This document shows, piece after piece, positions 11,601-36,551 of a stretch of DNA of 64,000 bases. Origin of the DNA: Diplonema japonicum (Eukaryota > Protista > Euglenozoa: Diplonemea); contig OZ025698.1 in assembly GCA_964019335.1 (NCBI GenBank), positions 372,001 through 436,000 of the forward strand, in the 5' to 3' direction. A program made the position numbers and the translations under genes. The stretch's first letter is position 1, and each line of letters starts with the position of its first letter. The notes beneath the pieces are model-generated. The model had not been told where the DNA came from and ran no database searches. It saw only the letters and a program-made list of their open reading frames with translations.

Positions 11601-14600
11601 CGAGGCGGCGACACCTTTTCAATGGAGGAAAACAGCATTCGTGATGCGGATGTCTCTGTCAGAACGGAGCCGGGCGGGAGGGGCACGCTCAGAGGAAACG
11701 TCATCCGTACCAACGAAGCCCTCGCAGTCCAACTCAGCGGTGGGACCACCGTTTTCGCGGAAAACTACATTTTTCAACACTGGCGGACACCAGCAGTACT
11801 GGCAGACCAGCCTGGCAAAGCGGTACTTCAAGGCAACATCGTCTTTGAAAACCTTGTCGGTGTCAAGACAATCAACGGGGCAGATCCCATCCTGCGGGAC
11901 AACCATTTAACAGGATGTTCCATTGCCGCCATACTTGTAACGGACGGTGGGGCCGGGTGCTTTGAAACCAATAAAATCTCGAAGAACAATCAGCTCGGTG
12001 TTCTGGCACAATGCGCGTCGGCGCCGGTCTTTTTCAAGAACGTGATAGAGCTAAACGGTACCAACGGCGTCATGTTGGAGGACAGCACGAAGGCTGTCTT
12101 TAAGGCTAACACCGTGACCGCGAACAAATTCGTCGGTTTCGTCGTGAGGACCAACGCAAACCCTTTATTGGAGGAGAACATGGTCAGCAGCAACCCCGTC
12201 GCGGGGATTCTTGTAAAAGAAGCGGGGAGGGGGATCATGCGGGCAAACTTTTTGAAAAGCACCGAAGCACATAAACCGCAAGTACAGATTAGGATAGAAG
12301 ATATCGGGTCAGACCCCTTCATCAGCAACTCGGAAATCTCAGGAGCGGCCACCCACGGCGTACAAGTTAGAAGCCACTGCAAAGGACAATTCGTGGGGAA
12401 CACCATCAGCCACAACACCGACTGTGGCATGGAAGTAACAGATGACGCCTCACCCACCGTGACAAAGAACACCTTCCACGACAATGGACAGCAAGGTCTT
12501 ACAATATCTCTCGGGTCGCGAGGTGTATATGAAAACAACACCGTGTTCAACAACGCAGAAGGCGGTATTCACATGCGTGCAGGCGCCACGGGAATCATCA
12601 AGGGCAACACTGTACGTGATGAAAGCCGCGGAGGCATCATGGTGACGAGCTCCACCGGTGAAGTGAGTGGGAACGACATTACATCGTGCAGCCGGTTCGG
12701 GATGTGCTTCAAAGGCTCCGTCCTTACTGTGGTAAAGGAGAACATCCTGCACCACAACACATCGCCCGCCGCCGTTGTCGAGCACGGTGCAACCCCGACA
12801 TTCACAGAAAACTTTTTCCACAGCAACCACCACGGGCTCGGGGTAGCAGTACGCGACCAAGGAAACCCGTTGTTGGAGAGAAACGTATTTTACAAGGAGC
12901 ACAAGGCTTTGTCTGTAAGCAGCGGTGGAGGCGGGGTGTACCGAAGCAATCTGTTCATAAAATGCGGAACGGAAGGAACGTACGTAGCATATGTCGAACG
13001 ATCGGAACCGAGCTTCGACTCGAATGTGTTCTGCATGAACGAAGGTGTGTCCGCGTGCTTCGGCGAAGGCGCCGGTGGAAAATTCAGCCACAACATCGTG
13101 TGCAACGGTGCCGGTGAGTCTACTGGCGTGGAACTCCTAGCCAACGCCGCGACCTGCTTCGCATCAAACACAATATGGGGCATGCGTGTGTGCGTATCTG
13201 TCACAGGTTCCGCGTCGCCCACCTTCACGGACGACGACATCATAGCAGGCGTCTCATCATGCGTTACAATCGCATCTGGTGGTGCCCCTTCCTTCAGCTC
13301 CTGTTTTATTCGGTCTAGTAAAATAACCGGCGTGCTTGTGACATCTGGGGAAGCAGGGTTTTCAGGATGCACGTTTCAAGGTAATCACTCGGGGTTGGAG
13401 GTCAAGGGTGGACAGGTCACCGTGACTGGCTCGACATTCCGGGAGAACAAAACTGGTGTCTCGTACACTGGCACCAACGGGACGATGACGGGTTGCACAT
13501 TGGTGTCGAACACGGTCGCTGTGGCGGTGCGGGCCGGGGCAAACCCTCTTATAAAAGGGAACAGGATCCACAGAAACACAAAGGGCGTCCATGTCACCTC
13601 CGAGGGAGAGGGCACCATCGAGGAGTGCGAGATATACCTCAACGACGACAACGTTGTGGTCGAAGGAGAGGCCGCACCGTACCTTGTGGAGAACCACATC
13701 TACGACGCGAGGCGGAACGGGGTTCACGTCAATGGGGGACAGGCTACGTTCACAGCGAACCACATATACGATAATTCCGACCACTCTTTCTACTGTGAAG
13801 CAGGTTCGCCCATCCTCACCGGGAATAGAATATACTACGCAAAGGAAGCAGGCGCCTTTCGGTCCGCCGACGACGCGACACCGTTAACCCGCAACAACAC
13901 TGTTCTTAACCATCAATCGCCTGTGATCAACGCTACCACGCAACAGGATAGAAAAGGCATCCACGAGAGGGCGGGGAAGGAGCTGGAGAAGGTTAAGGTG
14001 GGGCTCGCGAGAAGGGCGGCAAAGCGACGGGAGTCAGCGTCAGTCTCATTGAACATCGTGGAGCCCGTTCTCGAGATGTTCGTGGACGGCAACGGGGCGC
14101 CTAGGAAAGAGGCTAGGGACCAAAAAAGCACAAACGACGAAGAACGAAAAGAAATCGGCTCACGGGGCTCATTATTCGCAGAAGACCGAAGCGTATCCTA
14201 CACTATACTTGCGGAGGTGCGAAGGGGGTTGACGCATGTCGGCGGCTTTGGGCGGCAATCCGTAGCTGACGACAGCGGGCGGAGGAAAAGCAGTGCGTTT
14301 GGCGCACTTCGCACAAAGCTCCCCACTCCACCCCAGTCACGGCGAGGCACTGTGGCGTCTCCTCCGAGGACACCTGTTGCATCTCCTTCCCAGAGAACAC
14401 CTCCAAGAACGCCCGTAGCGAAGCCCCCCGCAACTGATCGCAAGCGAAGCAGTATCCGACCACGAAAAACCTCCTCTACTACTGTCACCCCTCGGAGCCA
14501 GTCCCCTGCACGGTCTCCACGCGCGACCCACAGGCCTTCCCGTCGTCGGAGCAACCTCCCAACCGTCAGCTCAACTACCGAATCGCGTCCTCCTACGCTG

Positions 14601-14708
14601 GAAGCCGTCCCGTACGACGCTTCCTTTGTTCCCGACAAGGAGGGTGACAACTTGCCCTCTATACCGCCTTCGCTTGAGGCTGTGTCTTACGTGGGTTCTA
14701 TACAGTGA
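8664..14708 (+). CDS. 2014-aa right-handed parallel beta-helix (PbH1/CASH, FBXO11-like repeats) protein with a P/R/S/T-rich tail
   Basis: Starts with SINEAVSFAKPGERIEVAQGKYFE, then dozens of ~23-aa N-x-I-x-x-N...G-I/V repeats and a low-complexity basic C-terminus. Confidence 0.85.
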   Translation: MSDVFWRDMPCSWPGRTGVAKTYFVQKQPRRGYFSSINEAVSFAKPGERIEVAQGKYFENVVVCKSVELVAEKGADKPEIYSHGVTLSVDADEAMISGLSIRTGEQECYALLVISGHPIISQCHIQNVQVTGLSNPIIEKNNITQSKTHGAYITGRAGGSFQGNTIENHGWYAVWVEATGQCEFVTNYIQHGGHGQIMVTGQTDFDSIGDVGPNVSASAEEVAPVFKGNKITDTVVNLIRKAELGHKRPSQVREVGDTVSIFVDEREESGQTSYVSDARVERFWKDRAAVEVKSFAVPVFERNWIADGLNHGVRIHQNGGGIFTKNKLMRNAGAGVCISLGSPKIFENDITFNRVGGIIATRDASGHITHNTINGNGLFGVQLSKGGRKLHIEHNTITDHEKMGMHFLDGGTAQCFKNEIAENRGPGVVTETLGDPVLKQNILRANTIGFTATRFGKGVLTDNEIVNNEKEGVIVTQSANPYLAKNRICQSTCNVVVTRNGLGTFIDNYIRDARQVQVLVSAQGNPTMTSNQIICGKDEGVVCKDYGAGVFRFNVVASHLGCNIVISKHADPCFERNLVMGSLIEGVRIEGNGKGTFLSNFIQRNMGSGVVVQSGGVPIFRNNLIRNCRQGGVYIGHGGGGQFEKNQFLRNLCGIEVEGTGAGSQEDDEQREIPVFTRNVVANSIQYGLWVGRGGCPLLQRNIIEGSRVAAVYIETSAHPTLLANEISNNKAGLVFRNEGRGVFIQNLIEGTETFAVEISNGSNPCIASNLITGGTDAIIVEDSAKGNLYQNIITGAETGILIGSGCTTVIKRNVITQCGTGMKLNGASDCELAENIISENTVRGLYVTPTGHCTLLSGHIVTGHTEGVVIEGRGSFTNSHIFNNSKGNLVIQEAGDPALKGNLIAGGTVGMACRGGHGGTSGTIIMKCTQGVVISGIASPEFSENLITECEVGVVVMDNANGMMTGNFLYTNTTNVLLRGGDTFSMEENSIRDADVSVRTEPGGRGTLRGNVIRTNEALAVQLSGGTTVFAENYIFQHWRTPAVLADQPGKAVLQGNIVFENLVGVKTINGADPILRDNHLTGCSIAAILVTDGGAGCFETNKISKNNQLGVLAQCASAPVFFKNVIELNGTNGVMLEDSTKAVFKANTVTANKFVGFVVRTNANPLLEENMVSSNPVAGILVKEAGRGIMRANFLKSTEAHKPQVQIRIEDIGSDPFISNSEISGAATHGVQVRSHCKGQFVGNTISHNTDCGMEVTDDASPTVTKNTFHDNGQQGLTISLGSRGVYENNTVFNNAEGGIHMRAGATGIIKGNTVRDESRGGIMVTSSTGEVSGNDITSCSRFGMCFKGSVLTVVKENILHHNTSPAAVVEHGATPTFTENFFHSNHHGLGVAVRDQGNPLLERNVFYKEHKALSVSSGGGGVYRSNLFIKCGTEGTYVAYVERSEPSFDSNVFCMNEGVSACFGEGAGGKFSHNIVCNGAGESTGVELLANAATCFASNTIWGMRVCVSVTGSASPTFTDDDIIAGVSSCVTIASGGAPSFSSCFIRSSKITGVLVTSGEAGFSGCTFQGNHSGLEVKGGQVTVTGSTFRENKTGVSYTGTNGTMTGCTLVSNTVAVAVRAGANPLIKGNRIHRNTKGVHVTSEGEGTIEECEIYLNDDNVVVEGEAAPYLVENHIYDARRNGVHVNGGQATFTANHIYDNSDHSFYCEAGSPILTGNRIYYAKEAGAFRSADDATPLTRNNTVLNHQSPVINATTQQDRKGIHERAGKELEKVKVGLARRAAKRRESASVSLNIVEPVLEMFVDGNGAPRKEARDQKSTNDEERKEIGSRGSLFAEDRSVSYTILAEVRRGLTHVGGFGRQSVADDSGRRKSSAFGALRTKLPTPPQSRRGTVASPPRTPVASPSQRTPPRTPVAKPPATDRKRSSIRPRKTSSTTVTPRSQSPARSPRATHRPSRRRSNLPTVSSTTESRPPTLEAVPYDASFVPDKEGDNLPSIPPSLEAVSYVGSIQ

Positions 14709-19700: not shown

Positions 19701-20389
19701 AAAAAAAAAACTTTTTTTTTTTGTGCTGTGTCTTTCCATGTTATGTGATGTCTGTGCGAATATATGGCCTCCGATGCTCTTTTGTCGGTCAGGGAATCTT
19801 CTCGATCTTCGCGTTCCTTTGAGGGAAAGGCGAAAAAAGAAGAAGAAAAAAGTACACCCCCCCCACTCATATGGATATGCACTTCCTGCTAGAACTTGTC
19901 ATCCTTGTGCCGAGAAGAAAAAAAAGAATTAATTTCCTTACTTTATTAGGTCTTACATTTTCTTTTTTCTGCATTTTCTCGCGTTTCTTTGCTCAGGCGA
20001 GATATAAAAAAAAATAAGCTCAAGTTCTCAAAATTATTGTCCCCCCCCCCCCCCCCCTCCCCCTTAATTCTTCTACATACGATTGGAGCAACTCCTGGGG
20101 GTTTATTTTTCTACACAGCCAAAAGAATGACCGAGTCTTGCTCCGGTTAGACTTTTTTGTTTGTGCTTTTGCGTTTCGCTCGAACACACGAGGAGGATGT
20201 GAAAGGGTTTCTGTCTGTCTTATTTTCTTGCTTTTTTTTTTTCTCTCTCTTTATATCTAATTCCATTTCAAAAGAACATGGCAGCTCCATTCTTCATCAT
20301 CATCATTCTTTTTCTTTTGTGTGTGTTTGTTTTCATTTTTTTCTCCCCCCTCCGATCCACAAGAACAGGTCATCCCCCCCCACCCAACG

Positions 20390-23300
20390 ATGTCTTCCCT
20401 GGGAGTCGCTCTGGCAGAGTTAGACTCAACAAAAGACGCATTACAGCATGAAGAATACGTAAATCTCAAGCGCAAGCTTTTCGAAAAGCACCTAGGGGTG
20501 TCGCCCTGTTTGACCGACAAAGAGAGCACCTTGAAGTACATGAAGGAGCAGGCTGTTGTAGCAGAAGTAGACGCAGCACTAAAACACTTGTTCGAAGCAA
20601 AACCACCGAACGCCGTCAGTTTTCTCGCCGATTATTTCACGAGGAAGGTGCAGCTGTCCCAACGGGGGAGGCCGCAGTCTGCCGCGCCGAGACACAAACA
20701 AACAAGAGGAACGAATCTATTCGAGAGGCTCGGAGGTGAAACCATGATGAAAACCATCGTTGAGCGGTTCTATGACAAGGTACTCGACGATAACCAGGTG
20801 GCGCATTTCTTCACAGGACACCTTATGTCGAAGCAGCAGGACATGCAGAACAAATTCTTGACTAAGCTCTTCGAAGGTCCTGACAACTACAACGGCAAAA
20901 CCATGCAACAGGCTCACAAGAGACTGGTCAGCAACATGGGTCTGAACGACAAACACTTCGATATCATGATTTCACTGCTCCGCAACGTGCTCACCGATGC
21001 CAATGTCCTGCATGATGATGTGGATCGCTGCATTTCTCTAGTCGAATCAACAAGAACCGACGTTCTATGCAAGGACATGAAGGACGAGGCCCCGTCCCTT
21101 TATGAACGACTCGGCGGGTGTGCCGCGCTTAACGCTACGGTTGAAAACTTTTACGAGAAGGTTCTTGCAGACAGCAGAGTGAACGGCTTCTTCGAGGGTG
21201 TCGATATGAAGAAGCAGAAGCAGATACAGAAAGCCTTCCTCACCTTTGCTTTCGGTGGCCCCAACAAGTACTCCGGACGCAATATGCGCAAGGCACATGA
21301 GAAGCTTGTCAAGGAAAAAGGCCTGAACGACAGCCACTACGACGCCATCGTCGACCTCTTAGCAGAGACACTCAGCGAGCTAGGCGTCAGCGCCACAGAG
21401 ATCAAAGCCGTTGCCGCGGTGGCCAACACTGTGAGGGACGATATCTTGTGCAAGGAGACGGGTACACCAACACCCGCGGCCAACGAGAGTCAACCAGAGC
21501 CGCCCACTCTGTTTGAAAGGCTTGGCGGTGCTGCTGCTGTCGACGCTGCCGTCGATCAGTTCTACGAAAAGGTACTCGCAGACAGCAGGGTGAAGGACTT
21601 CTTCGAAGGTGTTGATATGAAGAAACAACGAAAAATGCAAAAGGCCTTCCTCACCTTCGCCTTTGGCGGTCCCAACAAATACTCCGGACATTCCATGCAG
21701 AAGGCTCACGAGAAGCTTGTGAAGGAGAAGGGTCTGAACGAAACCCATTACAATGCGATCGTCGAACTGCTTGCAGAAACCCTGAAAGAACTAGGTGTTG
21801 GCGATGCTGATATTGGTGAGGTGGCGAAGGTGGCGAACAGTGTGAAGGATGATGTTCTGTGCAAAGGAATGGACTTAACACCACCTTCTCTGTTCGAAAG
21901 GCTTGGCGGTGCTGCTGCTGTCGACGCTGCCGTCGATCAGTTCTACGAAAAGGTACTCGCAGACAGCAGGGTGAAGGACTTCTTCGAAGGTGTTGATATG
22001 AACAAACAACGAAAAATGCAAAAGGCCTTCCTCACCTTCGCCTTTGGCGGTCCCAACAAATACTCCGGACATTCCATGCAGAAGGCTCACGAGAAGCTTG
22101 TGAAGGAGAAGGGTCTGAACGACAGCCACTACGATGCAATCGTGGAACTGCTTGGTGGGACTTTGAAGGAGCTTGGTGTTGGCAATGCCGATGTCGATGA
22201 AGTGGCTAAAATAGCAAACAGTGTGAGGGACGATGTTCTGTGCAAAGAGTTGGTGGCGCAAGCACCTTCTCTGTTCGAAAGGCTTGGCGGTGGTGCTGCT
22301 GTCGACGCTGCCGTCGATAAGTTCTACGAAAAGGTACTCGCAGACAGCAGGGTGAGGGACTTCTTCGAAGGTGTTGATATGAACAAACAACGAAAAATGC
22401 AAAAAGCCTTCCTCACCTTCGCCTTTGGCGGTCCCAACAAATACACCGGACATTCCATGCAGAAGGCTCACGAGAAGCTTGTGAAGGAGAAGGGTCTGAA
22501 CGAAACCCATTACAATGTGATCGTCGAACTGCTTGCAGAAACCCTGAGAGAACTAGGTGTTAGTAATACCGACATCGATGAAGTGGCGAAGGTGGCGAAC
22601 AGTGTGAAGGATGATGTTCTGTGCAAAGGAATGGAAACACCTCCCCTGTTCGAAAGGCTTGGCGGTGGTGCTGCTGTCGACGCTGCCGTTGATCAGTTCT
22701 ACGAAAAGGTACTCGCAGACAGCAGGGTGAAGGACTTCTTCGAAGGTGTTGATATGAAGAAACAAAAGCAGATGCAAAAATCCTTCCTCACCCTTGCCTT
22801 CGGCGGTCCCAACAAATACTCCGGACGTTCCATGCAGAAGGCTCACGAGAAGCTTGTGAAGGAGAAAGGTCTGAACGAAACCCACTACAATGCGATCGTC
22901 GAACTGCTTGCAGAAACCCTGAAAGAGCTAGGTGTTGGCGATGCTGATATCGAGGAAGTGGCTAAAATAGCAAACAGTGTAAAAGACGACATCCTGTGCA
23001 AAGGAATGGACGTAACACCACCCCCTCTGTTCGAAAGGCTTGGCGGTGAAGCGGCTGTCGACGCTGCCGTCGATCAGTTCTACGAAAAGGTACTCGCAGA
23101 CAGCAGGGTGAAGGACTTCTTCGAAGGTGTTGATATGAAGAAACAACGAAAAATGCAAAAGGCCTTCCTCACCTTCGCCTTCGGCGGTCTCAACAAATAC
23201 TCCGGACATTCCATGCAGAAGGCTCACGAGAAGCTTGTGAAGGAGAAGGGTCTGAACGAAACCCATTACGATGCAATCGTCGAACTGCTTGCAGAAACCC

Positions 23301-24541
23301 TGAGAGAACTAGGTGTTAGTAATACCGACATCGATGAAGTGGCGAAGGTGGCGAACAGTGTGAAGGATGACATTCTATGCAAAGGAATGGAACAGGCGTC
23401 CCTGTTCAGCAGGCTAGGCGGAGCGGCAGCAGTGGATTCGGTGGTGGACCTACTCTATGATGTAATACTTGAAGACGACAGTCTGAGTAAATTCTTCTCA
23501 CCAGAGGTAATGCCACAACTTCGTAAGATGCAAAAGGATTTCCTCACCTTCGCCTTCGGCGGGAATCCATCATACGAGGGCAGCTCAATGAGGAAAGCAC
23601 ACAAACGTGCTGTGAGCAACGGGCTCAGCGATGTACATTTCGACAAAGTTGCAAATCACATCACCGAATCTATGAAAGAGCTTGGCGTTTCAAAGTCTGA
23701 TATCGAAGAGGTAGCAAAGGCGGTCGAGTCATTAAGAGATGACATCCTCTGCAAAGGCGAAGAAGGTGACCTTACTACCGCAGGTAACCTATTCGAACGG
23801 CTTGGAGGCGAGGTCGCTGTTGACACCACTGTTGGAATCTTTTACGACAAGGTTTTGAAGGACAGTAGGGTGAAGGACTTCTTCGAGGGTGTTGATATGA
23901 AGAAACAAAAACAAATGCAACGCGCGTTCCTCACCTTCGCCTTCGGCGGTCCCAACAAATACACCGGACATTCCATGCAGAAGGCTCACGAGAAGCTTGT
24001 GAAGGAGAAGGGTCTGAACGAAACCCATTACAATGTGATCGTCGAACTGCTTGCAGAAACCCTGAGAGAACTAGGTGTTAGTAATACCGACATCGATGAA
24101 GTGGCGAAGGTGGCGAACAGTGTGAAGGATGATGTTCTGTGCAAAGGAGCTGAAGTAACCGCAGAGGCAGAGGGTGAACCTTTAATTGATGTCATCACTG
24201 AGGAAGGCGTTGAAAGGGTAGTCGAAAAGCTTTTTGACAAGCTTATGCTTAACCCGGACACACAAAAGTTTTTCTCCACTGTAAAGATGCGAAAGCTCAA
24301 GGGGTTGGCCGTAGAGTACTTTGTCTCAGCCTTCGGTGGCGATGAATATTGCGGCCGCAACCTGCGCGTGGCCCACGAAAAGGTAGTTAGTGAGAGGGGA
24401 CTAAACGATGCGAGTTATAACCTCTTCATGAAATTTTTTTCGGAATCACTTACCGAAGAAAACTTATCTGCCGCAGTTGTCTCGAGGGCGGTCGCACTAG
24501 CAGAGGATGCCCGTGGAGATGTGCTGTGTAAACCAGAATAG
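20390..24541 (+). CDS. Multi-domain globin A: N-terminal RIIa/Dpy-30-like docking domain plus 10 tandem group I truncated (2/2) haemoglobin domains
   Basis: Repeated LFERLGG...FYEKVLAD...FF...DMKKQ...FLTFAFGGP...Y.G..M.KAH (proximal His F8)...DVLCK. N-terminal YMKEQAVVAEVDAALKHLFEAKPPNAVSFLADYF. ATG chosen at 20390. Confidence 0.92.
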   Translation: MSSLGVALAELDSTKDALQHEEYVNLKRKLFEKHLGVSPCLTDKESTLKYMKEQAVVAEVDAALKHLFEAKPPNAVSFLADYFTRKVQLSQRGRPQSAAPRHKQTRGTNLFERLGGETMMKTIVERFYDKVLDDNQVAHFFTGHLMSKQQDMQNKFLTKLFEGPDNYNGKTMQQAHKRLVSNMGLNDKHFDIMISLLRNVLTDANVLHDDVDRCISLVESTRTDVLCKDMKDEAPSLYERLGGCAALNATVENFYEKVLADSRVNGFFEGVDMKKQKQIQKAFLTFAFGGPNKYSGRNMRKAHEKLVKEKGLNDSHYDAIVDLLAETLSELGVSATEIKAVAAVANTVRDDILCKETGTPTPAANESQPEPPTLFERLGGAAAVDAAVDQFYEKVLADSRVKDFFEGVDMKKQRKMQKAFLTFAFGGPNKYSGHSMQKAHEKLVKEKGLNETHYNAIVELLAETLKELGVGDADIGEVAKVANSVKDDVLCKGMDLTPPSLFERLGGAAAVDAAVDQFYEKVLADSRVKDFFEGVDMNKQRKMQKAFLTFAFGGPNKYSGHSMQKAHEKLVKEKGLNDSHYDAIVELLGGTLKELGVGNADVDEVAKIANSVRDDVLCKELVAQAPSLFERLGGGAAVDAAVDKFYEKVLADSRVRDFFEGVDMNKQRKMQKAFLTFAFGGPNKYTGHSMQKAHEKLVKEKGLNETHYNVIVELLAETLRELGVSNTDIDEVAKVANSVKDDVLCKGMETPPLFERLGGGAAVDAAVDQFYEKVLADSRVKDFFEGVDMKKQKQMQKSFLTLAFGGPNKYSGRSMQKAHEKLVKEKGLNETHYNAIVELLAETLKELGVGDADIEEVAKIANSVKDDILCKGMDVTPPPLFERLGGEAAVDAAVDQFYEKVLADSRVKDFFEGVDMKKQRKMQKAFLTFAFGGLNKYSGHSMQKAHEKLVKEKGLNETHYDAIVELLAETLRELGVSNTDIDEVAKVANSVKDDILCKGMEQASLFSRLGGAAAVDSVVDLLYDVILEDDSLSKFFSPEVMPQLRKMQKDFLTFAFGGNPSYEGSSMRKAHKRAVSNGLSDVHFDKVANHITESMKELGVSKSDIEEVAKAVESLRDDILCKGEEGDLTTAGNLFERLGGEVAVDTTVGIFYDKVLKDSRVKDFFEGVDMKKQKQMQRAFLTFAFGGPNKYTGHSMQKAHEKLVKEKGLNETHYNVIVELLAETLRELGVSNTDIDEVAKVANSVKDDVLCKGAEVTAEAEGEPLIDVITEEGVERVVEKLFDKLMLNPDTQKFFSTVKMRKLKGLAVEYFVSAFGGDEYCGRNLRVAHEKVVSERGLNDASYNLFMKFFSESLTEENLSAAVVSRAVALAEDARGDVLCKPE

Positions 24542-24788
24542 GCAAGCGGAACCCTTTTTTTTTTTTTTTTTTTTTTTTTTTGGCGGGCCGTTGCTAACCA
24601 CTTCGTTCCTATCATAGTGAATTTTTTTTTGTTATTTCCATAACAAAACAGAATAAGAATAAGAAATGTACATTTATAACCCCCCCCCCCCAACACATGC
24701 TCACGACGCGCTTGAGATTTTCATTCACCGACCTCCCCCTTCTTCCCTTGTCATACTTCTCCGCTTTCCTCTCTTTTTTTTTAAATGT

Positions 24789-24846
<58 letters not shown>

Positions 24847-24847
<1 letters not shown>

Positions 24848-27744
24848 TGAAAAGGAAGGTGACAGCATTACAACGGGACGGACATTGCCTCGAAGATCCA
24901 GCGCAGTGTGAAAGCACGGAGGGAGCTAAATTCAGGCTTCTCGGTGAATCGGAGCGCGATCATGCAGTTCGTAGCAGATAGGCCCGAGAGAGAGCTGGTA
25001 GCAGCAAAAACCAACGGTGCCATCTCGACCTCAATTGAAGAGATCGACCTAGCTTTCAGGTCGGCGTGGCGCCACATCTTTCGCAAATACGAAGAACGCC
25101 CCGAACCGCGCTACGACTCTTTTGAAGAGGCGTTTGGGACGCAGATCTCCCACCACCCGATGGTAGACCTCTCACTCACTCTGGACGATCTACGGGTAGT
25201 CCTGAAAAAGAAGGAGAAGCAGGAGTGCGCAGGGATCGACGGTTGGAGGCTGTGTGAACTCGCACATTTACCGGACGCACTGCTGGAGGGTTTCGTCTTT
25301 CTGTACGAATGGATAGAGGAAGGGGGACGATGGCCCAAGGCAGTCCTCACGGCGCTTGTAACTATGATCCCGAAAGGTGAGTCCGAAGAACCGCTGGAAC
25401 ACCGCCCAATCACGGTATCGAGTGCGTTCTACCGACTCTGGGCAGGCGCTAGACTACCCGCGATCCTCGAGTGGCAAGAGGCGTGGATCACCCCTCTCCA
25501 GTTCGGTTTCAGGCCGAAACACAGCACGGACGACCTCCTCGCCCGAGTCTGCACTAGTGTAGAGACGGCGAAAGTATCAGGTAAGCACCTCTATGGCCTC
25601 TCGGCTGACTTCAAAAAGTGCTTCGACTCGATCCCCCATGCGCTTACGTTCGATTTAGTGGAGCGTTTAGGCCTCAGCCAACTTATCCTGAGACCGATAA
25701 AATCCATCTACTCGGACCTAATCCGTCGGTTACGTTTCCCCATGGGGGTGGGCGCACCGTTCAGAACCACGAATGGGATTCTCCAGGGTTGTCCAATATC
25801 ACCGGTCTTCATCAACGCGATCCTCGCTATATTCACCAAGAAATGCACGGCGAACCCTAGAAACGCCCATCCTGTGTCGTATGCAGACGACCTAAACTTC
25901 ACGTCAGCTACCTCGGAGGCCGCGGTGCAACGCTCCGTTAACCTGCTTGGCACCCTCTGCAAGCTCACAGGGATGGCTATCCACCCGAAGAAAACTAAGT
26001 CGTTTGGAACGAAACCCAAGTACTGCGGCAACGTACAGCTACACGGGGAAACCTTCGACACGTCCTGCAAACTGCAGATCCTGAGGGGTACTGGTCTACT
26101 TCCAGCCTTGTAGAAGAGAGAACACGAGAGCCCGCAAGGCACTTGCGGAAATTGAGCGCCTCGCAGCAACGAAACTTTACCACAACCGCAAGGTACAGAT
26201 CATCGCAGAGAACATCCTACCGTCCGCCTTCTACGGCGTCCTATTCGACCCAATCCCAGACTCTTGGCTGGTGAAATTGAAGAAGCAGATCACGTCATGC
26301 ATCTGGGGCGCACGCAACCCGATGCGTTCCGCCAGTGCGCTGCTAGGGATTGCCTACAAAGGACACACCCTAGACCCTTACTCTTCGGTGGTCTATAAAG
26401 CCATTTCGACCCTAGGTCGCCTGTGCACACGACAGTCGAACAAGTCCCTATTCGAGTCGGGCTGGGAAACTTACAAGTACGCAATGGAGCGAGATGGAAC
26501 GCCGTCGCTTTCGAAGGGGCCATTTGGTAATGCGGAAATATGGCTACGGGACATCGGGACGAGATGGAAGGACTTTATTAAAGAGTTGCCACGGGGCATG
26601 CCACACCTGAAACACGAGGTCAGAGCGCGGTTGAAAGAAAAACTGCGGGGCGAGCTCGCCGAAGAGCGGGACACTTTCAAAGGAATCGAGACAGGAGTGG
26701 ACGAGATGAAGACGAACGTCCTACACAACGAGGTGGCGATCACCAACCCGCAGAAAGCGAGGAGAATCCTTTGTGCCGTTACTGGCGCCATCCTTCCACT
26801 GCACCCTAGAGCCTACGGCGACATGGATGGCACGCGAACGAAATGCCTTGGGTGTGACGCACCCTTCGACATTAGAGGCGGGACCAGCAACCTCCTGCTG
26901 CATACAATTTGGCACTGCCCGGCACACGCCGGTTTTAGAACGGCCAACGCCGACCGCGAATGGCTAGTGCAAGAACACACTAACTGGCCAACCTGCACCC
27001 GCGTACACGGCATCATTACCTCGGACTTGGACATCAGCCTATTGAGAGTCAAGGAGCTCCACCTGATGCTAGCAGAAGTGGCAGGCAAGCTCGAGAACCT
27101 GCACGCCGACAAGCAGGTCAGGTACACGAACCAGCATTTCTGGAATAGACCATTCCGACCGGGGAACCTCTTAACCCCGAAGCCTCTCCCCTGGTACCAC
27201 GAACATGGGCTGCAGAAGAAATACTTCCCAGGCCTAATCCCATTTGTCCTCAACTGGCTGAACGCCCTAAAATGGGGCGAGGAAGGCGGGCAAGTTTCTA
27301 AGGCGGAACTAGCAGTCGACCTCATTGCAACGGAAAGGCTCCACATGGGTGGGGAAGACATAGCATGCTGGGCGAGAAAGCTCGGCAGGATTCTCAGCGT
27401 CTTAGAAAGGATCCATCTAAAAGGGACGGGGAATCATCTGATTCCGGCAGAAACTATGAAGTCAGTACACTCACTACGCACCCTAGGGCTCCACAGCCAT
27501 GCCGTCACTGGCTACTCCACTCGTCCGATCTTCGCATCCCCGAAGGTCACCCACTCGATCCTAGAGGAACAAATGCGCACGCATTGCATCCTCAACAACT
27601 CGCTAGTTGGTTTCACGCCCAAGCTGCTGATGAGATACTACGACGGGCCTAAGGCACTACCACGACAGAAGGGATCAAACACTAGATGAGTTGATTGTCG
27701 TTAGGCGATCCTGTCACATACTGCAGGTTCCCTTCAAAGACATC
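24847..27744 (+). mobile_element. 5'-truncated non-LTR retrotransposon with RT and a CCHC finger; single-base frameshift at ~26084 (ORFs 24908-26113 and 26271-27689 form one ORF)
   Basis: RT motifs HRPITV, QFGFRP, DFKKCFDSIP, GILQGCPISP and YADD, then CLGC...HTIWHC. Starts after a 55-T run and ends 55 nt after the stop, at a T run. Confidence 0.9.
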
Positions 27745-27992
27745 TTTTTTTTTTTTTTTTTTCTTTTTTTTTTTTCGTTGATCTGAGGCCCTCATTTATT
27801 GATCAACGAGTCATGCCCCTGTATTTATATGACTCATGAAGCAGATGAAAGAAAGCAGAACATCATGGAACAACCAACAAAAAAAAAAAAAAAAAAAGGT
27901 CTTTCTTTCTTTTTTGTATTCATTTTTTTTCCCCATTTTTTTCCCCATCGTTCGGCTTCCGCAATCCATTGCCAATAATTCACAGTTTCAGC

Positions 27993-28029
<37 letters not shown>

Positions 28030-28044
28030 ATCCACACTACCGTT

Positions 28045-30849
28045 ATGGCAGCCCAAGGCCTTCTCAACATCAACAACATGAAAAAGTCCGACAAACGTAT
28101 CGAAAGAAGGCGGCTTCTTACCTCTGTAGTCCAGCCCAAGAAGACTCTCTTCGAGAAGCTTGGTGGGGCACCCTCCATTGATGCTGCTGTTGACTTGTTC
28201 TACAAGAAGGTTCTTGCTGACAGAAGGGTGAACTCCTTCTTCAAGGGAACCGATATGAAGAAGCAACACAGGATGCAGAAGGCGTTCCTCACCTTTGCTT
28301 TCGGTGGTCCTGGCTCATACAGTGGGAAGAACATGAGGAAGGCACACCAGAAGATTGTGGACGAGCAGGGCCTGAACGACAGCCACTACGATGTGATTGT
28401 TGAGCTTCTTGGTGGTACTTTGAAGGAACTTGGTGTGTGTGATGCTGATGTTGCTGAGGCAGCCACCATTGCCAACAGTGTGAGGGATGATGTTCTGTGC
28501 AAGGACCCTGTTGCTGAGAAGAAGACCCTCTACGAGAAGCTTGGTGGGGCACCCTCTATTGATGCTGCTGTTGACTTGTTCTACAAGAAGGTTCTTGCAG
28601 ACAGGAGGGTGAACTCCTTCTTCAAAGGAACCGATATGAAGAAGCAACACAGGATGCAGAAGGCGTTCCTCACCTTCGCCTTTGGTGGTCCCGGCTCATA
28701 CAGTGGGAAGAACATGAGGAAGGCACACCAGAAGCTTGTGGACGAGCAGGGCCTGAACGACAGCCACTACGATGTGATTGTTGAGCTTCTTGGTGGTACT
28801 TTGAAGGAACTTGGTGTTTGTGATGCCGATGTCACTGAGGCAGCCACCATTGCCAACAGTGTGAGGGACGATGTTCTGTGCAAGGACCCTGTTGCTGAGA
28901 AGAAGTCTTGCGATGCTGCTGTTGACATGTTCTACGACAAGATTCTTGCTGATGAACATTTGAACTCCTTCTTCAAAGGAACAGATATGAAGAAAGAGTA
29001 CAAGATGCAGAAGGCGTTCCTCACCTTCGCCTTTGGTGGTCCTGGCACATACAGTGGGAAGAACCCCCACGTCGTGTACCTCCTACTTTTCCTTTTCTTG
29101 TGCATGACTAAGATGGCTCCGGACCAGAAGCATACTCGTCGGGAAAGCCCAAGGGAGATAAAAGCACACAAACCCGTAGAGGAGCAGGTCTTGAACGACA
29201 GCCACTACGATGTGATTGTTGAGCTTCTTGGTGGTACCTTGAAGGAACTTGGTGCGTGTGATGCTGATGTTGCTGAGGCAGCCACCATTGCCAACAGTGT
29301 GAGGGATGATGTTCTGTGCAAGGACCCTGTTGCTGAGAAGAAGACCCTCTACGAGAAGCTTGGTGGGGCACCCTCCATTGATGCTGTTGTTGACTTGTTC
29401 TACAAGAAGGTTCTTGCAGACAGGAGGGTGAACTCCTTCTTCAAGGGAACCGATATGAAGAAGCAACACAGGATGCAGAAGGCGTTCCTCACCTTCGCCT
29501 TTGGTGGTCCCGGCTCATACAGTGGGAAGAACATGAGGAAGGCACACCAAAAGCTTGTGGACGAGCAGGGCCTGAACGACAGCCACTACGATGTGATTGT
29601 TGAGCTTCTTGGTGGTACCTTGAAGGAACTTGGTGTGTGTGATGCTGATGTCACTGAGGCAGCCACCATTGCCAACAGTGTGAGGGACGATGTTCTGTGC
29701 AAGGACCCTGTTGCTGAGAAGAAGACCCTTTACGAGAAGCTTGGTGGAGCACCCTCCATTGATGCTGCTGTTGACTTGTTCTACAAGAAGGTTCTTGCAG
29801 ACAGAAGGGTGAACTCCTTCTTCAAAGGAACCGATATGAAGAAGCAACACAGGATGCAGAAGGCGTTCCTCACCTTCGCCTTTGGTGGTCCCGGCTCATA
29901 CAGTGGGAAGAACATGAGGAAGGCACACCAGAACCTTGTAACAGTGCAGGGCCTGAACGACAGCCACTACGATGTGATTGTTGAGCTTCTTGGTGGTACC
30001 TTGAAAGAACTTGGTGTGTGTGATGCTGATGTCACTGAGGCAGCCACCATTGCCAACAGTGTGAGGGACGATGTTCTGTGCAAGGACCCTGTTGCTGAGA
30101 AGAAGACCCTCTACGAGAAGCTTGGTGGGGCACCCTCCATTGATGCTGCTGTTGACATGTTCTACAAGAAGGTTCTTGCTGACAGGAGGGTGAACTCCTT
30201 CTTCAAGGGAACCGATATGAAGAAGCAACACAGGATGCAGAAGGCGTTCCTCACCTTCGCCTTTGGTGGTCCTGGCTCATACAGTGGGAAGAACATGAGG
30301 AAGGCACACCAAAAGCTTGTGGACGAGCAGGGCCTGAACGACAGCCACTACGATGTGATTGTTGAGCTTCTTGGTGGTACCTTGAAGGAACTTGGTGTGT
30401 GTGATGCTGATGTCACTGAGGCAGCCACCATTGCCAACAGTGTGAGGGACGACGTTCTGTGCAAGGACCCTGTTGCTGAGAAGAAGACCCTCTTCGAGAA
30501 GCTTGGTGGGGCACCCTCCATTGATGCTGCTGTTGACTTGTTCTACAAGAAGGTTCTTGCAGACAGAAGGGTGAACTCCTTCTTCAAGGGAACCGACATG
30601 AAGAAGCAACACAGGATGCAGAAGGCGTTCCTCACCTTTGCTTTCGGTGGTCCTGGCTCATACAGTGGGAAGAACATGAGGAAGGCACACCAAAAGCTTG
30701 TAACGGTACAAGGCTTGAACGACAGCCACTACGATGTGATTGTTGAGCTTCTTGGTGGTACTTTGAAGGAACTTGGTGTGTGTGATGCTGATGTTGCTGA
30801 GGCTGCATCCATTGCCAACAGTGTGAGGGACGATGTTCTGTGCAAGTAG
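28045..30849 (+). CDS. Multi-domain globin B: 33-aa leader plus 7 tandem group I truncated haemoglobin domains (domain 3 aberrant)
   Basis: 127-aa unit TLYEKLGGAPSIDAAVDLFY...AFGGPGSYSGKNMRKAH...DDVLCKDPVAEKK. Confidence 0.92.
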   Translation: MAAQGLLNINNMKKSDKRIERRRLLTSVVQPKKTLFEKLGGAPSIDAAVDLFYKKVLADRRVNSFFKGTDMKKQHRMQKAFLTFAFGGPGSYSGKNMRKAHQKIVDEQGLNDSHYDVIVELLGGTLKELGVCDADVAEAATIANSVRDDVLCKDPVAEKKTLYEKLGGAPSIDAAVDLFYKKVLADRRVNSFFKGTDMKKQHRMQKAFLTFAFGGPGSYSGKNMRKAHQKLVDEQGLNDSHYDVIVELLGGTLKELGVCDADVTEAATIANSVRDDVLCKDPVAEKKSCDAAVDMFYDKILADEHLNSFFKGTDMKKEYKMQKAFLTFAFGGPGTYSGKNPHVVYLLLFLFLCMTKMAPDQKHTRRESPREIKAHKPVEEQVLNDSHYDVIVELLGGTLKELGACDADVAEAATIANSVRDDVLCKDPVAEKKTLYEKLGGAPSIDAVVDLFYKKVLADRRVNSFFKGTDMKKQHRMQKAFLTFAFGGPGSYSGKNMRKAHQKLVDEQGLNDSHYDVIVELLGGTLKELGVCDADVTEAATIANSVRDDVLCKDPVAEKKTLYEKLGGAPSIDAAVDLFYKKVLADRRVNSFFKGTDMKKQHRMQKAFLTFAFGGPGSYSGKNMRKAHQNLVTVQGLNDSHYDVIVELLGGTLKELGVCDADVTEAATIANSVRDDVLCKDPVAEKKTLYEKLGGAPSIDAAVDMFYKKVLADRRVNSFFKGTDMKKQHRMQKAFLTFAFGGPGSYSGKNMRKAHQKLVDEQGLNDSHYDVIVELLGGTLKELGVCDADVTEAATIANSVRDDVLCKDPVAEKKTLFEKLGGAPSIDAAVDLFYKKVLADRRVNSFFKGTDMKKQHRMQKAFLTFAFGGPGSYSGKNMRKAHQKLVTVQGLNDSHYDVIVELLGGTLKELGVCDADVAEAASIANSVRDDVLCK
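28141..30846 (+). repeat. 381-bp near-identical coding tandem repeat (globin units)
   Basis: Units differ mostly by scattered single substitutions; the period of 381 bp equals 127 codons. Confidence 0.9.
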
Positions 30850-31850
30850 AAAGAAATAAAAGAAGGAAAAAAAAAAGTAAATGATGATGATGCGCGCTCT
30901 ATAAATGTTGCACTTTTATTTAAAAGAAAAGGGGGAGGCGACGGTGTGTGGCGTGAATTTTTTTTCTCTCGTGTGTGTGGAATGAATTTATCTTATTCGT
31001 TTTGATTTTTTATTCTTGTTTATTGTGTTCAAAATGGAGAGTGGCCTGATTTTTTATTCAAAAGTCTACGGTGATAGCACATGTGAAAATTAGTGGCGTA
31101 ACTTTTTTTACCATGCCCTTTTCAATAAAAGAGTGCAATTTTTTTTTTAAAAGTTTTTATTATAGCTAGCCGCGGCCCATCATCGCCCCTGCACACTGAA
31201 ACATTATCGAACTTTTATTCTACTCTACCCCCCCCCTCTTTTTTTTAGTCTACGCAAGTGTACCTTCCAAGGTATCACTTCATCCCAATTATTTCCTCTC
31301 TTATTTCTTATTATTCTTTTTGTTGGGGCGGCTTTTGTTTTATGTTTTCTAAAGATTAAAGTCTTTAAAAGAGCACTTGACTAAAAGGCTCTTATATTCT
31401 TTGCTGTCTGAGGCTTCAAGCAACAAGGAGTAAAAAAAAGGCAGAGGAAAAAAAAAAAAAAGAAATAAAGATTCTCAAGAACGTCCCTTGATTCCACCAG
31501 CTGTCCGACAAATCCCTCTCAATTTTTTTTTTTTTTTTTGTTTTCGTTTTTTTGTTTTTTGTTTCCTTTCCCCAGCAAAAAAATATTTATTTTAAAAAGT
31601 ATTTATTTTCTTTTATGTTCTTCTTCAACTACCTGCAAGCTTGTGGGGGGTTTTTTGACACAAGGTCGTCCAAAGAGTAGCGTCCCGTCGCCATCTTTTT
31701 GAGGTCACGTTTCAGCTCATGTGAAGGTCAGTGCGCAGTGCCCCCTTGTCTACAGTGTATTGTCGTGAAAAGCAACAACTCGAGAGGAACACCTCCTTGT
31801 TTTCAACCATTTTCTAGCACACCACAGTTCAAAAAAGAAGAAGAAACAAA

Positions 31851-33074
31851 ATGGCCGCCAAGGGTCTTCTTGACATCAACAACATGAAGAAATCTGATAA
31901 AACCGCAGAAAGGCAACAGCTTCTAACTTCTGTTGTCCAGCCTAAAAAGTCCCTCTTCGAGAAGCTTGGTGGGGCACCCTCCATTGATGCTGCTGTTGAC
32001 ATGTTCTACGACAAGGTTCTTCAGGACGAACGTGTGAACTCCTTCTTCAAGGGAACCGATATGAAGAAGCAGCGAAGGATGCAGAAGGCGTTCCTCACCT
32101 TTGCTTTCGGTGGTCCCGGCTCATACAGTGGGAAGAACATGAGGAAGGCACACCAGAAACTTGTGGACGAGCAGGGCCTGAACGACAGCCACTACGATGT
32201 GATTGTTGAGCTTCTTGGTGGTACTTTGAAGGAACTTGGTGTGTGTGATGCTGATGTCACTGAGGCAGCCACCATTGCCAACAGTGTGAGGGATGATGTT
32301 CTGTGCAAGGACCCTGTTGCTGAGAAGAAGACCCTCTACGAGAAGCTTGGTGGGGCACCCTCCATTGATGCTGCTGTTGACATGTTCTACGACAAGGTTC
32401 TTGCTGACGAACGTGTGAACTCCTTCTTCAAGGGAACCGACATGAAGAAGCAGCGAAGGATGCAGAAGGCGTTCCTCACCTTCGCCTTTGGTGGTCCCGG
32501 CTCATACAGTGGGAAGAACATGAGGAAGGCACACCAGAAGCTTGTGGACGAGCAGGGCTTGAACGACAGCCACTACGATGTGATTGTTGAGCTTCTTGGC
32601 GGTACCTTGAAGGAACTTGGTGTGTGTGATGCTGATGTCACTGAGGCAGCCACCATTGCCAACAGTGTGAGGGACGATGTTCTGTGCAAGGACCCTGTTG
32701 CTGAGAAGAAGAGCCTCTACGAGAAGCTTGGTGGGGCACCCTCCATTGATGCTGCTGTTGACATGTTCTACGACAAGGTTCTTCAGGACAAACGTGTGAA
32801 CTCCTTCTTCAAGGGAACCGATATGAAGAAGCAGCGAAGGATGCAGAAGGCGTTCCTCACCTTTGCTTTCGGTGGTCCTGGCTCATACAGTGGGAAGAAC
32901 ATGAGGAAGGCACACCAGAAGCTTGTGGACGAGCAGGGCTTGAACGACAGCCACTACGATGTGATTGTTGAGCTTCTTGGTGGTACTTTGAAGGAACTTG
33001 GTGTTTGTGATGCTGATGTTGCTGAGGCAGCCACCATTGCCAACAGTGTGAGGGACGATGTTCTGTGCAAGTAA
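31851..33074 (+). CDS. Multi-domain globin C: leader plus 3 tandem group I truncated haemoglobin domains (paralog of B)
   Basis: Same leader type (MAAKGLLDINNMKKSDK) and same 127-aa unit as gene B. Confidence 0.92.
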   Translation: MAAKGLLDINNMKKSDKTAERQQLLTSVVQPKKSLFEKLGGAPSIDAAVDMFYDKVLQDERVNSFFKGTDMKKQRRMQKAFLTFAFGGPGSYSGKNMRKAHQKLVDEQGLNDSHYDVIVELLGGTLKELGVCDADVTEAATIANSVRDDVLCKDPVAEKKTLYEKLGGAPSIDAAVDMFYDKVLADERVNSFFKGTDMKKQRRMQKAFLTFAFGGPGSYSGKNMRKAHQKLVDEQGLNDSHYDVIVELLGGTLKELGVCDADVTEAATIANSVRDDVLCKDPVAEKKSLYEKLGGAPSIDAAVDMFYDKVLQDKRVNSFFKGTDMKKQRRMQKAFLTFAFGGPGSYSGKNMRKAHQKLVDEQGLNDSHYDVIVELLGGTLKELGVCDADVAEAATIANSVRDDVLCK

Positions 33075-35066: not shown

Positions 35067-36551
35067 ATGTCTCGAAACGTGAAAATAGCACTGTTTTTTT
35101 TTTTCTCCGTGTGGATGATCCGGACGCTCGTTGCAACGTGGTGGGTGGTCTGGGGGAACGGATCGGGTTCCGATCCAGCCAACTCGTCACCCCCAAGACT
35201 AAAACCACAGCTAAGAGCAAACCTATCAACCCCCCAAATAAAAGACATAAGACAAGTAATCATCATAGGCGGCGGCGTAGCCGGCCTATCCGCAGGTGTC
35301 TACACAAGCAGAGCAGGCATCGACACCGTAATCATCTCAGAGGGCAGCTCACAGCTAAGCATGACATCAAACGTACAAAACTACCCAGGAGTCCCGCCAA
35401 CAACTGGCGTTGAACTCCTCCTCCAGATCAGCAAGCAAGCCACCGGTACAGGTGCCGTACTATACCCGTCATCCGTGAAACAAATTGAAACAAGTACCTA
35501 CCCGTTTCAAATAACAACCGGCAACAACTCAATCCTCTACGCATGGGCGGTTATCCTTGCAACTGGCGCATCACCAAGATGGCCGAAACTTCGAAACGAA
35601 TTAAAATACATGGGCAGATATATACATTCTTGTCCTTTATGTGACGGGTCCTTATACACAGACAAGCGGGTTGTGGTGATAGGAGGTGGTGACAGTGCTT
35701 TTGAAGCTGTTTTGTACCTTGCCAAGCTTGTTTCTGTTGTGACGGTGCTGCACAGGCGGGAACAGTGGAAAGCTTCGGAGATTCTTCGGTCGAAGCTGCC
35801 GAAGAATGTTGTGTTGCGTCCTGGGGTTGAACCGATGTCGTGGGAGGGCACACCAGACGATATCCTCACAGGTATCACGTTTCGCGACACTTCTACCAAC
35901 AAAGAAGAAACCCTTCAAATCGACGGTGCGTTCATCGCGATAGGGAACGAGCCTTCAACGTCTTACTTAACATCAACCGATGTCCGCCTTGAACCGACAA
36001 GACATGTTACTGTTTTCGACAGTATACACACCACAGTTGAGGGTATCTACGCGGCGGGGGAGGTTTCGGACAGCAGGTTCAGACAAGCTGTCACTGCTGC
36101 GAGTATGGGAGCGATGGCTGCCATCGAAGTTGAAAAATGGCTTTTGAGTATAAAACAGTGTGGGGTTTCGGGGCATTTGGTAACCCCACCCCCGCCTCCT
36201 GTGACACAGCGACCTTCGAAACAGGTTGCATTTGACTTGGAATGTGAAGAGATAGCCCGTTCCTGTTTAGACGCATTTGTAAATTCTCACGCTGTTGTTA
36301 TATTCTCCAAAACGTACTGTCCTTACTGCACCACTGCCAAGGAGATGATCGCTTCTCTCAATATTGCGGACGTTGCTGTTATCGAGCTGGACACGTCCCC
36401 CCGTGGCTCGGCTGTGCACGATGTCCTCAAAAAGAAAACGGGCCGCCGCACCGTTCCGAACATATTTGTTCGCGGGAGGAACATCGGCGGCAGCGAGGAG
36501 CTGGCCAAGGAGCTGCCTTTCCTGGAACTGCTTTTGAAGAAGAACGGGTGA
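35067..36551 (+). CDS. Low-MW NADPH thioredoxin reductase fused to a C-terminal dithiol glutaredoxin, with an N-terminal hydrophobic signal/anchor
   Basis: Reductase motifs IIGGGVAG, VQNYPG, ILATGA, redox CPLC, VIGGGDSA, GIYAAGEV and RQAVTAASMG. Grx motifs FSKTYCPYC, TVPNIFV and IGG. Confidence 0.9.
   Translation: MSRNVKIALFFFFSVWMIRTLVATWWVVWGNGSGSDPANSSPPRLKPQLRANLSTPQIKDIRQVIIIGGGVAGLSAGVYTSRAGIDTVIISEGSSQLSMTSNVQNYPGVPPTTGVELLLQISKQATGTGAVLYPSSVKQIETSTYPFQITTGNNSILYAWAVILATGASPRWPKLRNELKYMGRYIHSCPLCDGSLYTDKRVVVIGGGDSAFEAVLYLAKLVSVVTVLHRREQWKASEILRSKLPKNVVLRPGVEPMSWEGTPDDILTGITFRDTSTNKEETLQIDGAFIAIGNEPSTSYLTSTDVRLEPTRHVTVFDSIHTTVEGIYAAGEVSDSRFRQAVTAASMGAMAAIEVEKWLLSIKQCGVSGHLVTPPPPPVTQRPSKQVAFDLECEEIARSCLDAFVNSHAVVIFSKTYCPYCTTAKEMIASLNIADVAVIELDTSPRGSAVHDVLKKKTGRRTVPNIFVRGRNIGGSEELAKELPFLELLLKKNG

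Follow-up and report, generated by a model that had tools for sequence, protein, structure and literature searches.

Polymeric truncated-haemoglobin genes of Diplonema japonicum: a cluster of 20 globin units and its relatives in other protists

Why should a flagellate encode 20 truncated-haemoglobin domains in three adjacent genes, and is such a cluster a new kind of system? The question is raised by a 64,000-nucleotide (nt) stretch of the Diplonema japonicum genome (GenBank assembly GCA_964019335.1, contig OZ025698.1, positions 372,001 to 436,000 of the forward strand), which we call the window and whose own numbering we use throughout. A sequence-only reading of the window had described three co-oriented open reading frames (ORFs) built from tandem group I truncated-haemoglobin (TrHb1) domains, and had named them the best candidate there for an undescribed system. 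Our main outcome is a correction: although the cluster exists and is well conserved, it does not represent a new kind of system. The three genes, which appear functional, probably make a high-affinity O2-binding and nitric oxide (NO)-dioxygenase array, partly anchored to a scaffold.

We confirmed the three frames, all on the + strand. Their features are as follows:

20390..24541, + strand: gene 1, a polymeric TrHb1 of 1383 amino acids (aa); N-terminal helical region with a probable docking domain, 10 globin units, stop codon
20519..20665, + strand: gene 1 docking region, a probable RIIa/DPY-30-type dimerisation/docking (D/D) helix-turn-helix, residues ~44-92
20711..21082, + strand: gene 1 unit 1, divergent; E-G replaces the second GG
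21092..21463, + strand: gene 1 unit 2; Ile at E10
21503-21874, 21884-22255, 22265-22636, 22640-23011, 23021-23392, + strand: gene 1 units 3-7, canonical; nucleotide identity 88-95%
23396..23764, + strand: gene 1 unit 8, divergent; B9 Leu and E7 Leu, with Tyr B10, Gln E11 and His F8 retained
23783..24154, + strand: gene 1 unit 9, canonical
24188..24538, + strand: gene 1 unit 10, a degenerate C-terminal cap domain ending ...CKPE; 72 bits against the unit model
28045..30849, + strand: gene 2, 934 aa; 32-aa leader and 7 units
28141-28512, 28522-28893, 28885-29331, 29341-29712, 29722-30093, 30103-30474, 30484-30846, + strand: gene 2 units 1-7
28885..29331, + strand: gene 2 unit 3, damaged; 30-nt deletion and an 87-nt in-frame insertion at ~29065-29151
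31851..33074, + strand: gene 3, 407 aa; leader of the gene 2 type and 3 units
31947-32318, 32328-32699, 32709-33071, + strand: gene 3 units 1-3, 96-97% identical to one another

Translation of the three ORFs gives 2,724 codons with neither internal stops nor frameshifts, and Tandem Repeats Finder returned a period of 381 nt in all three genes. Units are 127 residues long and are joined by linkers of 3-13 residues. A hidden Markov model (HMM) derived from this locus finds 10, 7 and 3 units in genes 1, 2 and 3, the numbers given by the sequence-only reading, and reports unit 3 of gene 2 as two pieces owing to its insertion; the Pfam model PF01152 matches 9, 7 and 3 stretches, with scores of 545, 364 and 177 bits (cut-off 21). 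When the whole assembly (62.5 Mb, 132 contigs) was scanned in six frames with PF01152, 19 of 20 matches lay within this cluster. The long ORFs of the window are nearly all on the + strand, with T-rich tracts upstream of genes. The start ATG of gene 1 agrees with the start of its orthologue in D. papillatum (P0001), and the 32-residue leader of genes 2 and 3 is also kept in a transcript of another diplonemid. The best protein matches of the locus come from D. papillatum, Lacrimia and Rhynchopus, all diplonemids, as expected from the protist host that had been proposed.

In GlbN numbering, the proximal His F8 and Phe CD1 are present in all 20 units. Tyr B10 is found in 19/20 and the B9-B10 Phe-Tyr pair in 18/20; Gln E7, Met E10 and Gln E11 are found in 17, 18 and 19 units, respectively. 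The first Gly-Gly motif is kept in 18/20 units (the exceptions are unit 10 of gene 1 and unit 3 of gene 2) and the second in 19/20 (E-G in unit 1 of gene 1), so the earlier statement that nearly all domains retain the GG motifs, the Phe-Tyr pair and the F8 His was accurate. Canonical appearance is complete in 18/20 units. In unit 10 of gene 1, His F8 and Phe CD1 remain, whereas the first GG is gone and so are Tyr B10, Gln E7 and Gln E11. In unit 3 of gene 2, the deletion takes the pre-A region and the first GG, and the insertion falls directly before His F8. We rejected an intron as the explanation of this insertion: the sole in-frame GT...AG piece is ~42 nt long, and its removal does not restore the consensus.

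The closest solved structure of the units is Synechocystis GlbN (E 3e-37), aligned gap-free over residues 2-104; further solved relatives are the Tetrahymena pyriformis truncated haemoglobin (trHb), Chlamydomonas THB1 and Mycobacterium tuberculosis HbN. Group I accounts for the best 25 of the solved relatives (E 3e-37 to 4e-10), and the other eight are far weaker (E 3e-8 to 8e-4); these eight include HbO, Geobacillus trHb and YjbI (E ~1e-4), which we take to be group II, and four labelled only 'Globin'. Since the nearest solved structures are group I and the recognised group II structures match far more weakly, we assign the units to the group I (GlbN-like) 2/2 globins, as had been proposed. 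For proteins 1-3, the 3/3-globin model PF00042 was not reported at E<=0.01, where the only globin models were PF01152 and an overlapping Protoglobin (PF11563), and the nearest structures are 2/2; the earlier view that these genes are unrelated to the concatenated 3/3 globins of invertebrates therefore holds. Those proteins (nine domains in Artemia, 13 in Biomphalaria and two in clams) also arose by internal duplication and carry many units per chain, but they belong to another fold class and are unrelated in sequence; in the classic cases they carry O2 outside cells.

Position E10 is the sixth haem ligand position in GlbN (His46) and in THB1 (Lys), and His117 of GlbN forms a covalent bond to the haem. 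Synechocystis sp. PCC 6803 GlbN (PDB 1MWB, 1RTX, 1S69, 2HZ1) shares with the units the Phe-Tyr pair at B9-B10, Gln E7, Gln E11, His F8 and both GG motifs, whereas it is single-domain, lacks the terminal Cys, has His46 at E10 where the units have Met, and has His117 at a position that aligns with Val here. Chlamydomonas reinhardtii THB1 (4XDI) and M. tuberculosis HbN (1IDR) are likewise group I proteins with Tyr B10 and Gln E11 as in the units; they differ in being single-domain, in the Lys E10 distal ligand of THB1, and in the Leu E7 and pre-A motif of HbN. By analogy, these two proteins may serve as the functional model for the units.

Two residues deserve separate mention. Met E10 is common to D. 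japonicum and D. papillatum, with Ile, Val, Lys or Ser in other diplonemids; because the position varies, His/Met haem ligation, if it occurs, would not be a family constant. At the end of the H helix, all 20 units carry a Cys ('VLCK'). In most of the diplonemid orthologues examined, the majority of units have this Cys, and the ciliate and green-algal polymers examined lack it at the corresponding position, which suggests that it is diplonemid-specific among the polymers compared. Covalent attachment of haem through it was considered and seems unlikely, since the Cys lies six residues beyond the position of GlbN His117.

Are the arrays maintained as genes? Pairwise dN/dS between units is 0.04-0.44, and the units are under purifying selection; for the damaged unit 3 of gene 2 the value is 0.40, and selection on this unit is relaxed. 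The units of gene 1 are all distinct from one another (nucleotide identity <=95%), and hence the gene 1 array is no simple assembly expansion; units of genes 2 and 3 are 91-99% identical. The unique parts of gene 1 (20373-21544, 23341-23974 and 24119-24543) are reproduced exactly by contigs from three sequencing runs of two studies; these contigs break within its repeats, as expected of short-read assembly. This comparison covered 20000-25900, and the counts for genes 2 and 3 rest on the assembly. Tracts of poly-C, poly-T and CT-rich sequence flank gene 1 (20040-20250 and 24544-24860), with very high k-mer depth and false short-read joints at 20040-20250 and 24544-24640. We considered a mobile element at the latter two places and rejected it, the depth and joints being due to poly-C and poly-T low complexity. 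Trinity transcripts run across unit junctions in Lacrimia lanifica (1882 aa, 12-13 units), Rhynchopus euleeides (1148 aa, 8 units) and a fragment (P0248). Intact frames, purifying selection and the transcripts of relatives together give strong but indirect support for genes 1-3 being functional and expressed.

The claim that did not survive is that of novelty. A HMMER search with a single unit against 1.84 billion representatives gave 3813 matches, and domains were counted in the best 150. Among these, ~80 have at least two TrHb1 units and 19 have at least five; the sequence-only reading had itself said that many already-described proteins of this architecture would refute its claim, and this largely applies. 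The D. papillatum 'Group 1 truncated hemoglobin GlbN' has 20 units in a 2801-aa protein and 16 in a 2287-aa one; Perkinsus olseni proteins reach 2375 aa and 16 units, and P. marinus has 5 units. Polymers of 12 units in Pseudocohnilembus persalinus, 6 in Volvox africanus and 5 in Astrephomene were also found, as were a Tetrahymena malaccensis protein (P0011) in which peroxiredoxin is fused to 7 TrHb1 units and, in other diplonemid assemblies, four such genes clustered on one contig. Among protists, truncated haemoglobins of 10-20 units are widespread, occurring in diplonemids, Perkinsus, ciliates and volvocine algae. Those of Perkinsus, ciliates and volvocines likewise carry tandem 2/2 units on one polypeptide, with domains ~30-50% identical to the units here and falling into their own clades, but no multiunit example examined outside the diplonemids has a D/D domain, a CKPE cap or the terminal Cys.

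The design has also been noticed in print. An article by Hade et al. 2017 (IUBMB Life 69:479) is, by its title and a paper citing it, reportedly about multidomain or multiunit truncated haemoglobins. Proteins with several 2/2 haemoglobin (2/2Hb) domains per polypeptide are acknowledged in a passage of PMC7082302, which refers to Hade et al. for them. In the literature searched, we found no paper on the diplonemid or Perkinsus polymers themselves and no characterised polymeric truncated haemoglobin; the D. papillatum genome paper does not contain 'globin' in its text and has one orthogroup line in a supplement. With D. papillatum, Perkinsus, ciliate and volvocine polymers in databases and multidomain 2/2Hb in print, the claim of an undescribed system is not supported. 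Polymers of this general design are already known, although the diplonemid family as such appears to be undiscussed and the proteins of this genome are absent so far from the databases searched. What is new here is anatomical detail, namely the docking domain, the cap domain, the lineage-wise amplification and the terminal Cys. The docking domain, cap and terminal Cys are worthwhile leads for D. papillatum and do not make a new system. Among marine heterotrophic flagellates, diplonemids are some of the most abundant, and D. papillatum is a species open to genetic work. Their polymers allow a test of why and by what route haem proteins have polymerised again and again in evolution, and of how a haem array could be anchored through a docking domain.

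Gene 1 has its orthologue in the D. papillatum GlbN (KAJ9457924.1, 2801 aa, with the alternative 2287-aa model), at 57% identity with 92% query coverage. The two share the docking motif, tandem 124-residue units, the degenerate CKPE end, Met E10 and the terminal Cys. They differ in unit number (16 or 20 against 10), in the separate amplification of their central units, and in the spacer from docking motif to first unit, which is longer in D. papillatum. Two NCBI models of the one D. papillatum gene (P0001, P0231) stand a block of four units apart, at 16 and 20; the extra four are near-identical to their neighbours, and the unit number there is variable or uncertain. The N-terminal motif and the ...CKPE end occur together in D. 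papillatum (P0001, P0231), in a diplonemid from the ENA database (P0002) and in Lacrimia (P0006). In a FastTree phylogeny of units with SH-like supports, whose backbone support is low, unit 10 of gene 1 falls together (support 0.85) with the domains that end the proteins of D. papillatum, Lacrimia and an ENA diplonemid, and the degenerate cap is a positional orthologue across these diplonemids.

Central units behave differently from the cap in the same tree: they cluster by gene and by species, and were hence amplified or homogenised separately from lineage to lineage. The non-diplonemid polymers fall into a separate clade each, a pattern consistent with independent polymerisation. The nearest single-domain relatives of the units are bacterial GlbN proteins (60-68% identity), closer than other eukaryotic truncated haemoglobins (TrHbs), and this hints at a bacterial origin of the diplonemid units. 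On a 322-kb contig of the ENA diplonemid, two relatives of the gene 2/3 class, P0007 with 6 units and P0069 with 5, end in a ~40-residue hydrophobic tail, membrane-anchor-like by eye; genes 2 and 3 have no such tail. In bacterial relatives, CheA and MCP chemotaxis proteins are fused to between one and three TrHb1 units, and a CheA-like protein on a Logan contig (P0012) has three TrHb1 units with 52% identity to the units here. Tandem TrHb1 units thus also occur in redox-enzyme and chemotaxis-kinase contexts, as in the peroxiredoxin and CheA-like fusions.

What sets gene 1 apart from genes 2 and 3 is its N-terminus. An AF2 model of this region has a pLDDT of 79 overall and ~95 across residues 56-91. 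Compared by VIA-align with 48,161 chains, the model matched best the D/D domain of PKA RI-beta (Z 6.8, root-mean-square deviation 2.2 angstroms, 55 residues aligned), a Z that lies below the level excluding a common helical arrangement. Of the 12 top matches, eight are D/D modules, among them chains of radial spokes and axonemal doublets as well as RII-alpha, yeast PKA and SPA17; DPY-30 ranks 21st (Z 4.7). Foldseek also put DPY-30 and PKA D/D domains at the top, all at E>1. The Pfam model RIIa (PF02197) scored below threshold on gene 1 (18.4 bits against a cut-off of 22.4) and Dpy-30 (PF05186) did not match; RIIa matched at E<0.1 in only two of 10 orthologues. The motif is kept in nine orthologues of gene 1, and no paralogue of the docking domain was found elsewhere in the genome. 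We conclude that the N-terminus of gene 1 is probably a D/D domain of the RIIa/DPY-30 type. Elsewhere, such domains occur mostly in axonemes or on PKA anchors. The leader of genes 2 and 3 was considered as an AKAP-like helix for this domain and rejected, as its hydrophobic spacing, judged by eye, does not fit.

What might such chains do? TrHbN proteins with Tyr B10 and Gln E11, such as M. tuberculosis HbN and Chlamydomonas THB1, are NO dioxygenases that release O2 slowly. On this model, we think it probable that genes 1-3 encode a high-affinity array that binds O2 and dioxygenates NO. The products would be beads-on-a-string chains with a capacity of up to 10, 7 and 3 haems, each unit binding haem and, through its Tyr B10/Gln E7/Gln E11 network, holding O2 tightly. 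The chains would then act as dense O2-scavenging and NO-dioxygenase arrays, detoxifying reactive nitrogen and oxygen, rather than as O2 carriers; the Tetrahymena malaccensis fusion of peroxiredoxin to 7 TrHb units suggests a redox or detoxification link by analogy. In the gene 1 class, which would be a conserved one among diplonemids, the docking domain would pair two chains and hold them to a scaffold by way of one of its amphipathic helices. Genes 2 and 3 would make up another class, with a leader alone and probably soluble products. The number of units may grow and shrink by unequal recombination in each lineage, with selection keeping every unit haem-competent.

Several points weigh against this proposal. 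Function is argued from residues and relatives alone, and two of the 20 units are degenerate or damaged (unit 10 of gene 1 and unit 3 of gene 2). Met E10 could make the units hexacoordinate, with a different chemistry, and flavohaemoglobin-like modules elsewhere in the genome could cover NO dioxygenation. The docking assignment concerns a small fold with a Z of 6.8, non-significant Foldseek matches and an RIIa score below cut-off.

The anchoring of gene 1 can be taken further, and we put this forward as a tentative idea that we think unlikely. Two 10-unit chains would be dimerised, docking ~20 haems on an axonemal or cortical scaffold for local control of O2 and NO at the motility apparatus, with the invariant terminal Cys acting as a thiol redox or S-nitrosation relay serviced by reductases of the thioredoxin/glutaredoxin type, for instance the fusion encoded 2 kb downstream. 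In the literature searched, we came across no docked polymeric globin like this.

Of the other functions that might be proposed, storage survives best, although we consider it rather doubtful. Here the arrays would hold a large cytosolic O2 pool, or ease O2 diffusion, in a flagellate that crosses oxyclines; polymerisation would raise the haem concentration without an osmotic rise, as in the polymeric haemoglobins of invertebrates. Up to 20 haem sites in one cluster, independent expansion of unit number in several protist lineages and purifying selection on every unit all suit a store, but in characterised TrHbN proteins the Tyr B10/Gln E7/Gln E11 set is linked to very slow release of O2, which suits scavenging or catalysis more than delivery. 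D. papillatum tolerates hypoxia (PMC8611851), yet globins go unmentioned in the text and supplements of that study.

A haem-based sensor or scaffold, in which the array sits in a PKA-anchor-like or axonemal complex and the state of the haem or Cys modulates motility or signalling, is less probable again. It would draw on the radial-spoke, central-apparatus and doublet-microtubule chains and PKA regulatory subunits among the nearest D/D structures, on a Cys that is universal in these units, in the majority in most diplonemid orthologues and absent from the ciliate and green-algal polymers examined, and on the bacterial fusions of TrHb1 to CheA and MCP proteins. However, a Pfam search of genes 1-3 found no output domain, genes 2 and 3 have no docking domain, and ten near-identical sensor units have no obvious sensing rationale. 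The fusion of thioredoxin-reductase-like and glutaredoxin domains that lies 2 kb downstream would also favour a sensor or scaffold, but adjacency means little if co-oriented genes are polycistronic, as in other euglenozoans.

The sequence-only reading had offered three functions, an O2 store, an NO-scavenging array and a multi-haem redox chain, and the last is the least likely of them. Met E10, present in 18/20 units, could in principle give cytochrome-like His/Met ligation and so let tandem haems relay electrons along the polypeptide. We regard this as very improbable: the haems sit in separate 2/2 domains on flexible linkers, the genes encode no inter-domain packing, membrane or redox partner domain, E10 is Ile, Val, Lys or Ser in other diplonemids, and the conserved O2-stabilising Tyr B10, Gln E7 and Gln E11 point to ligand chemistry. 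It is just as improbable that the counts are assembly expansions or that the copies are untranscribed and degenerating, for although gene 2 and 3 units are 91-99% identical, short-read contigs break inside the arrays, one unit is damaged, the D. papillatum models differ by four units and a retroelement sits between genes 1 and 2, the frames are open throughout, dN/dS is far below 1, the gene 1 units are all distinct, with unique parts matched exactly by contigs of other runs, and orthologous arrays are transcribed in relatives. The array that binds O2 tightly and dioxygenates NO is the reading that we prefer.

Two neighbouring features in the window have been mentioned above:

24908..27689, + strand: retroelement between genes 1 and 2; reverse-transcriptase ORF at 24908-26113 (RVT_1 1.7e-24) and a second ORF at 26271-27689
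35067-36551, + strand: 494-aa ORF, thioredoxin-reductase-like Pyr_redox_2 with a C-terminal glutaredoxin (Pfam), 2 kb downstream of gene 3

The second ORF of the retroelement (472 aa) has no Pfam match. A-runs that follow the element reach 28026, 18 nt short of the gene 2 start codon; the retroelement is not part of the globin system. The Pyr_redox_2-glutaredoxin fusion might act as thiol reductase on the globin units with their terminal Cys.

Elsewhere in the genome, the sole PF01152 match outside the cluster lies on contig C65 (~477696-478019, 26 bits), in a 461-aa ORF (+ strand) that combines a glutaredoxin (CPFC motif) with a weak C-terminal truncated-haemoglobin domain. On contig C104, an ORF of 1179 aa (- strand) joins an adenylate/guanylate cyclase domain to cytochrome b5, a 3/3 globin and reductase domains of the FAD/NAD-binding type; in effect, a b5 and flavohaemoglobin-like module is attached to a cyclase. 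There are at least eight 3/3-globin matches in the genome, in ORFs of 546-1185 aa, with further ones on contigs C49, C103, C37, C6, C113 and C52. Within the window, an ORF of 2014 aa upstream of the cluster (8664-14708, + strand) contains ~16 repeats of the right-handed beta-helix/NosD type.

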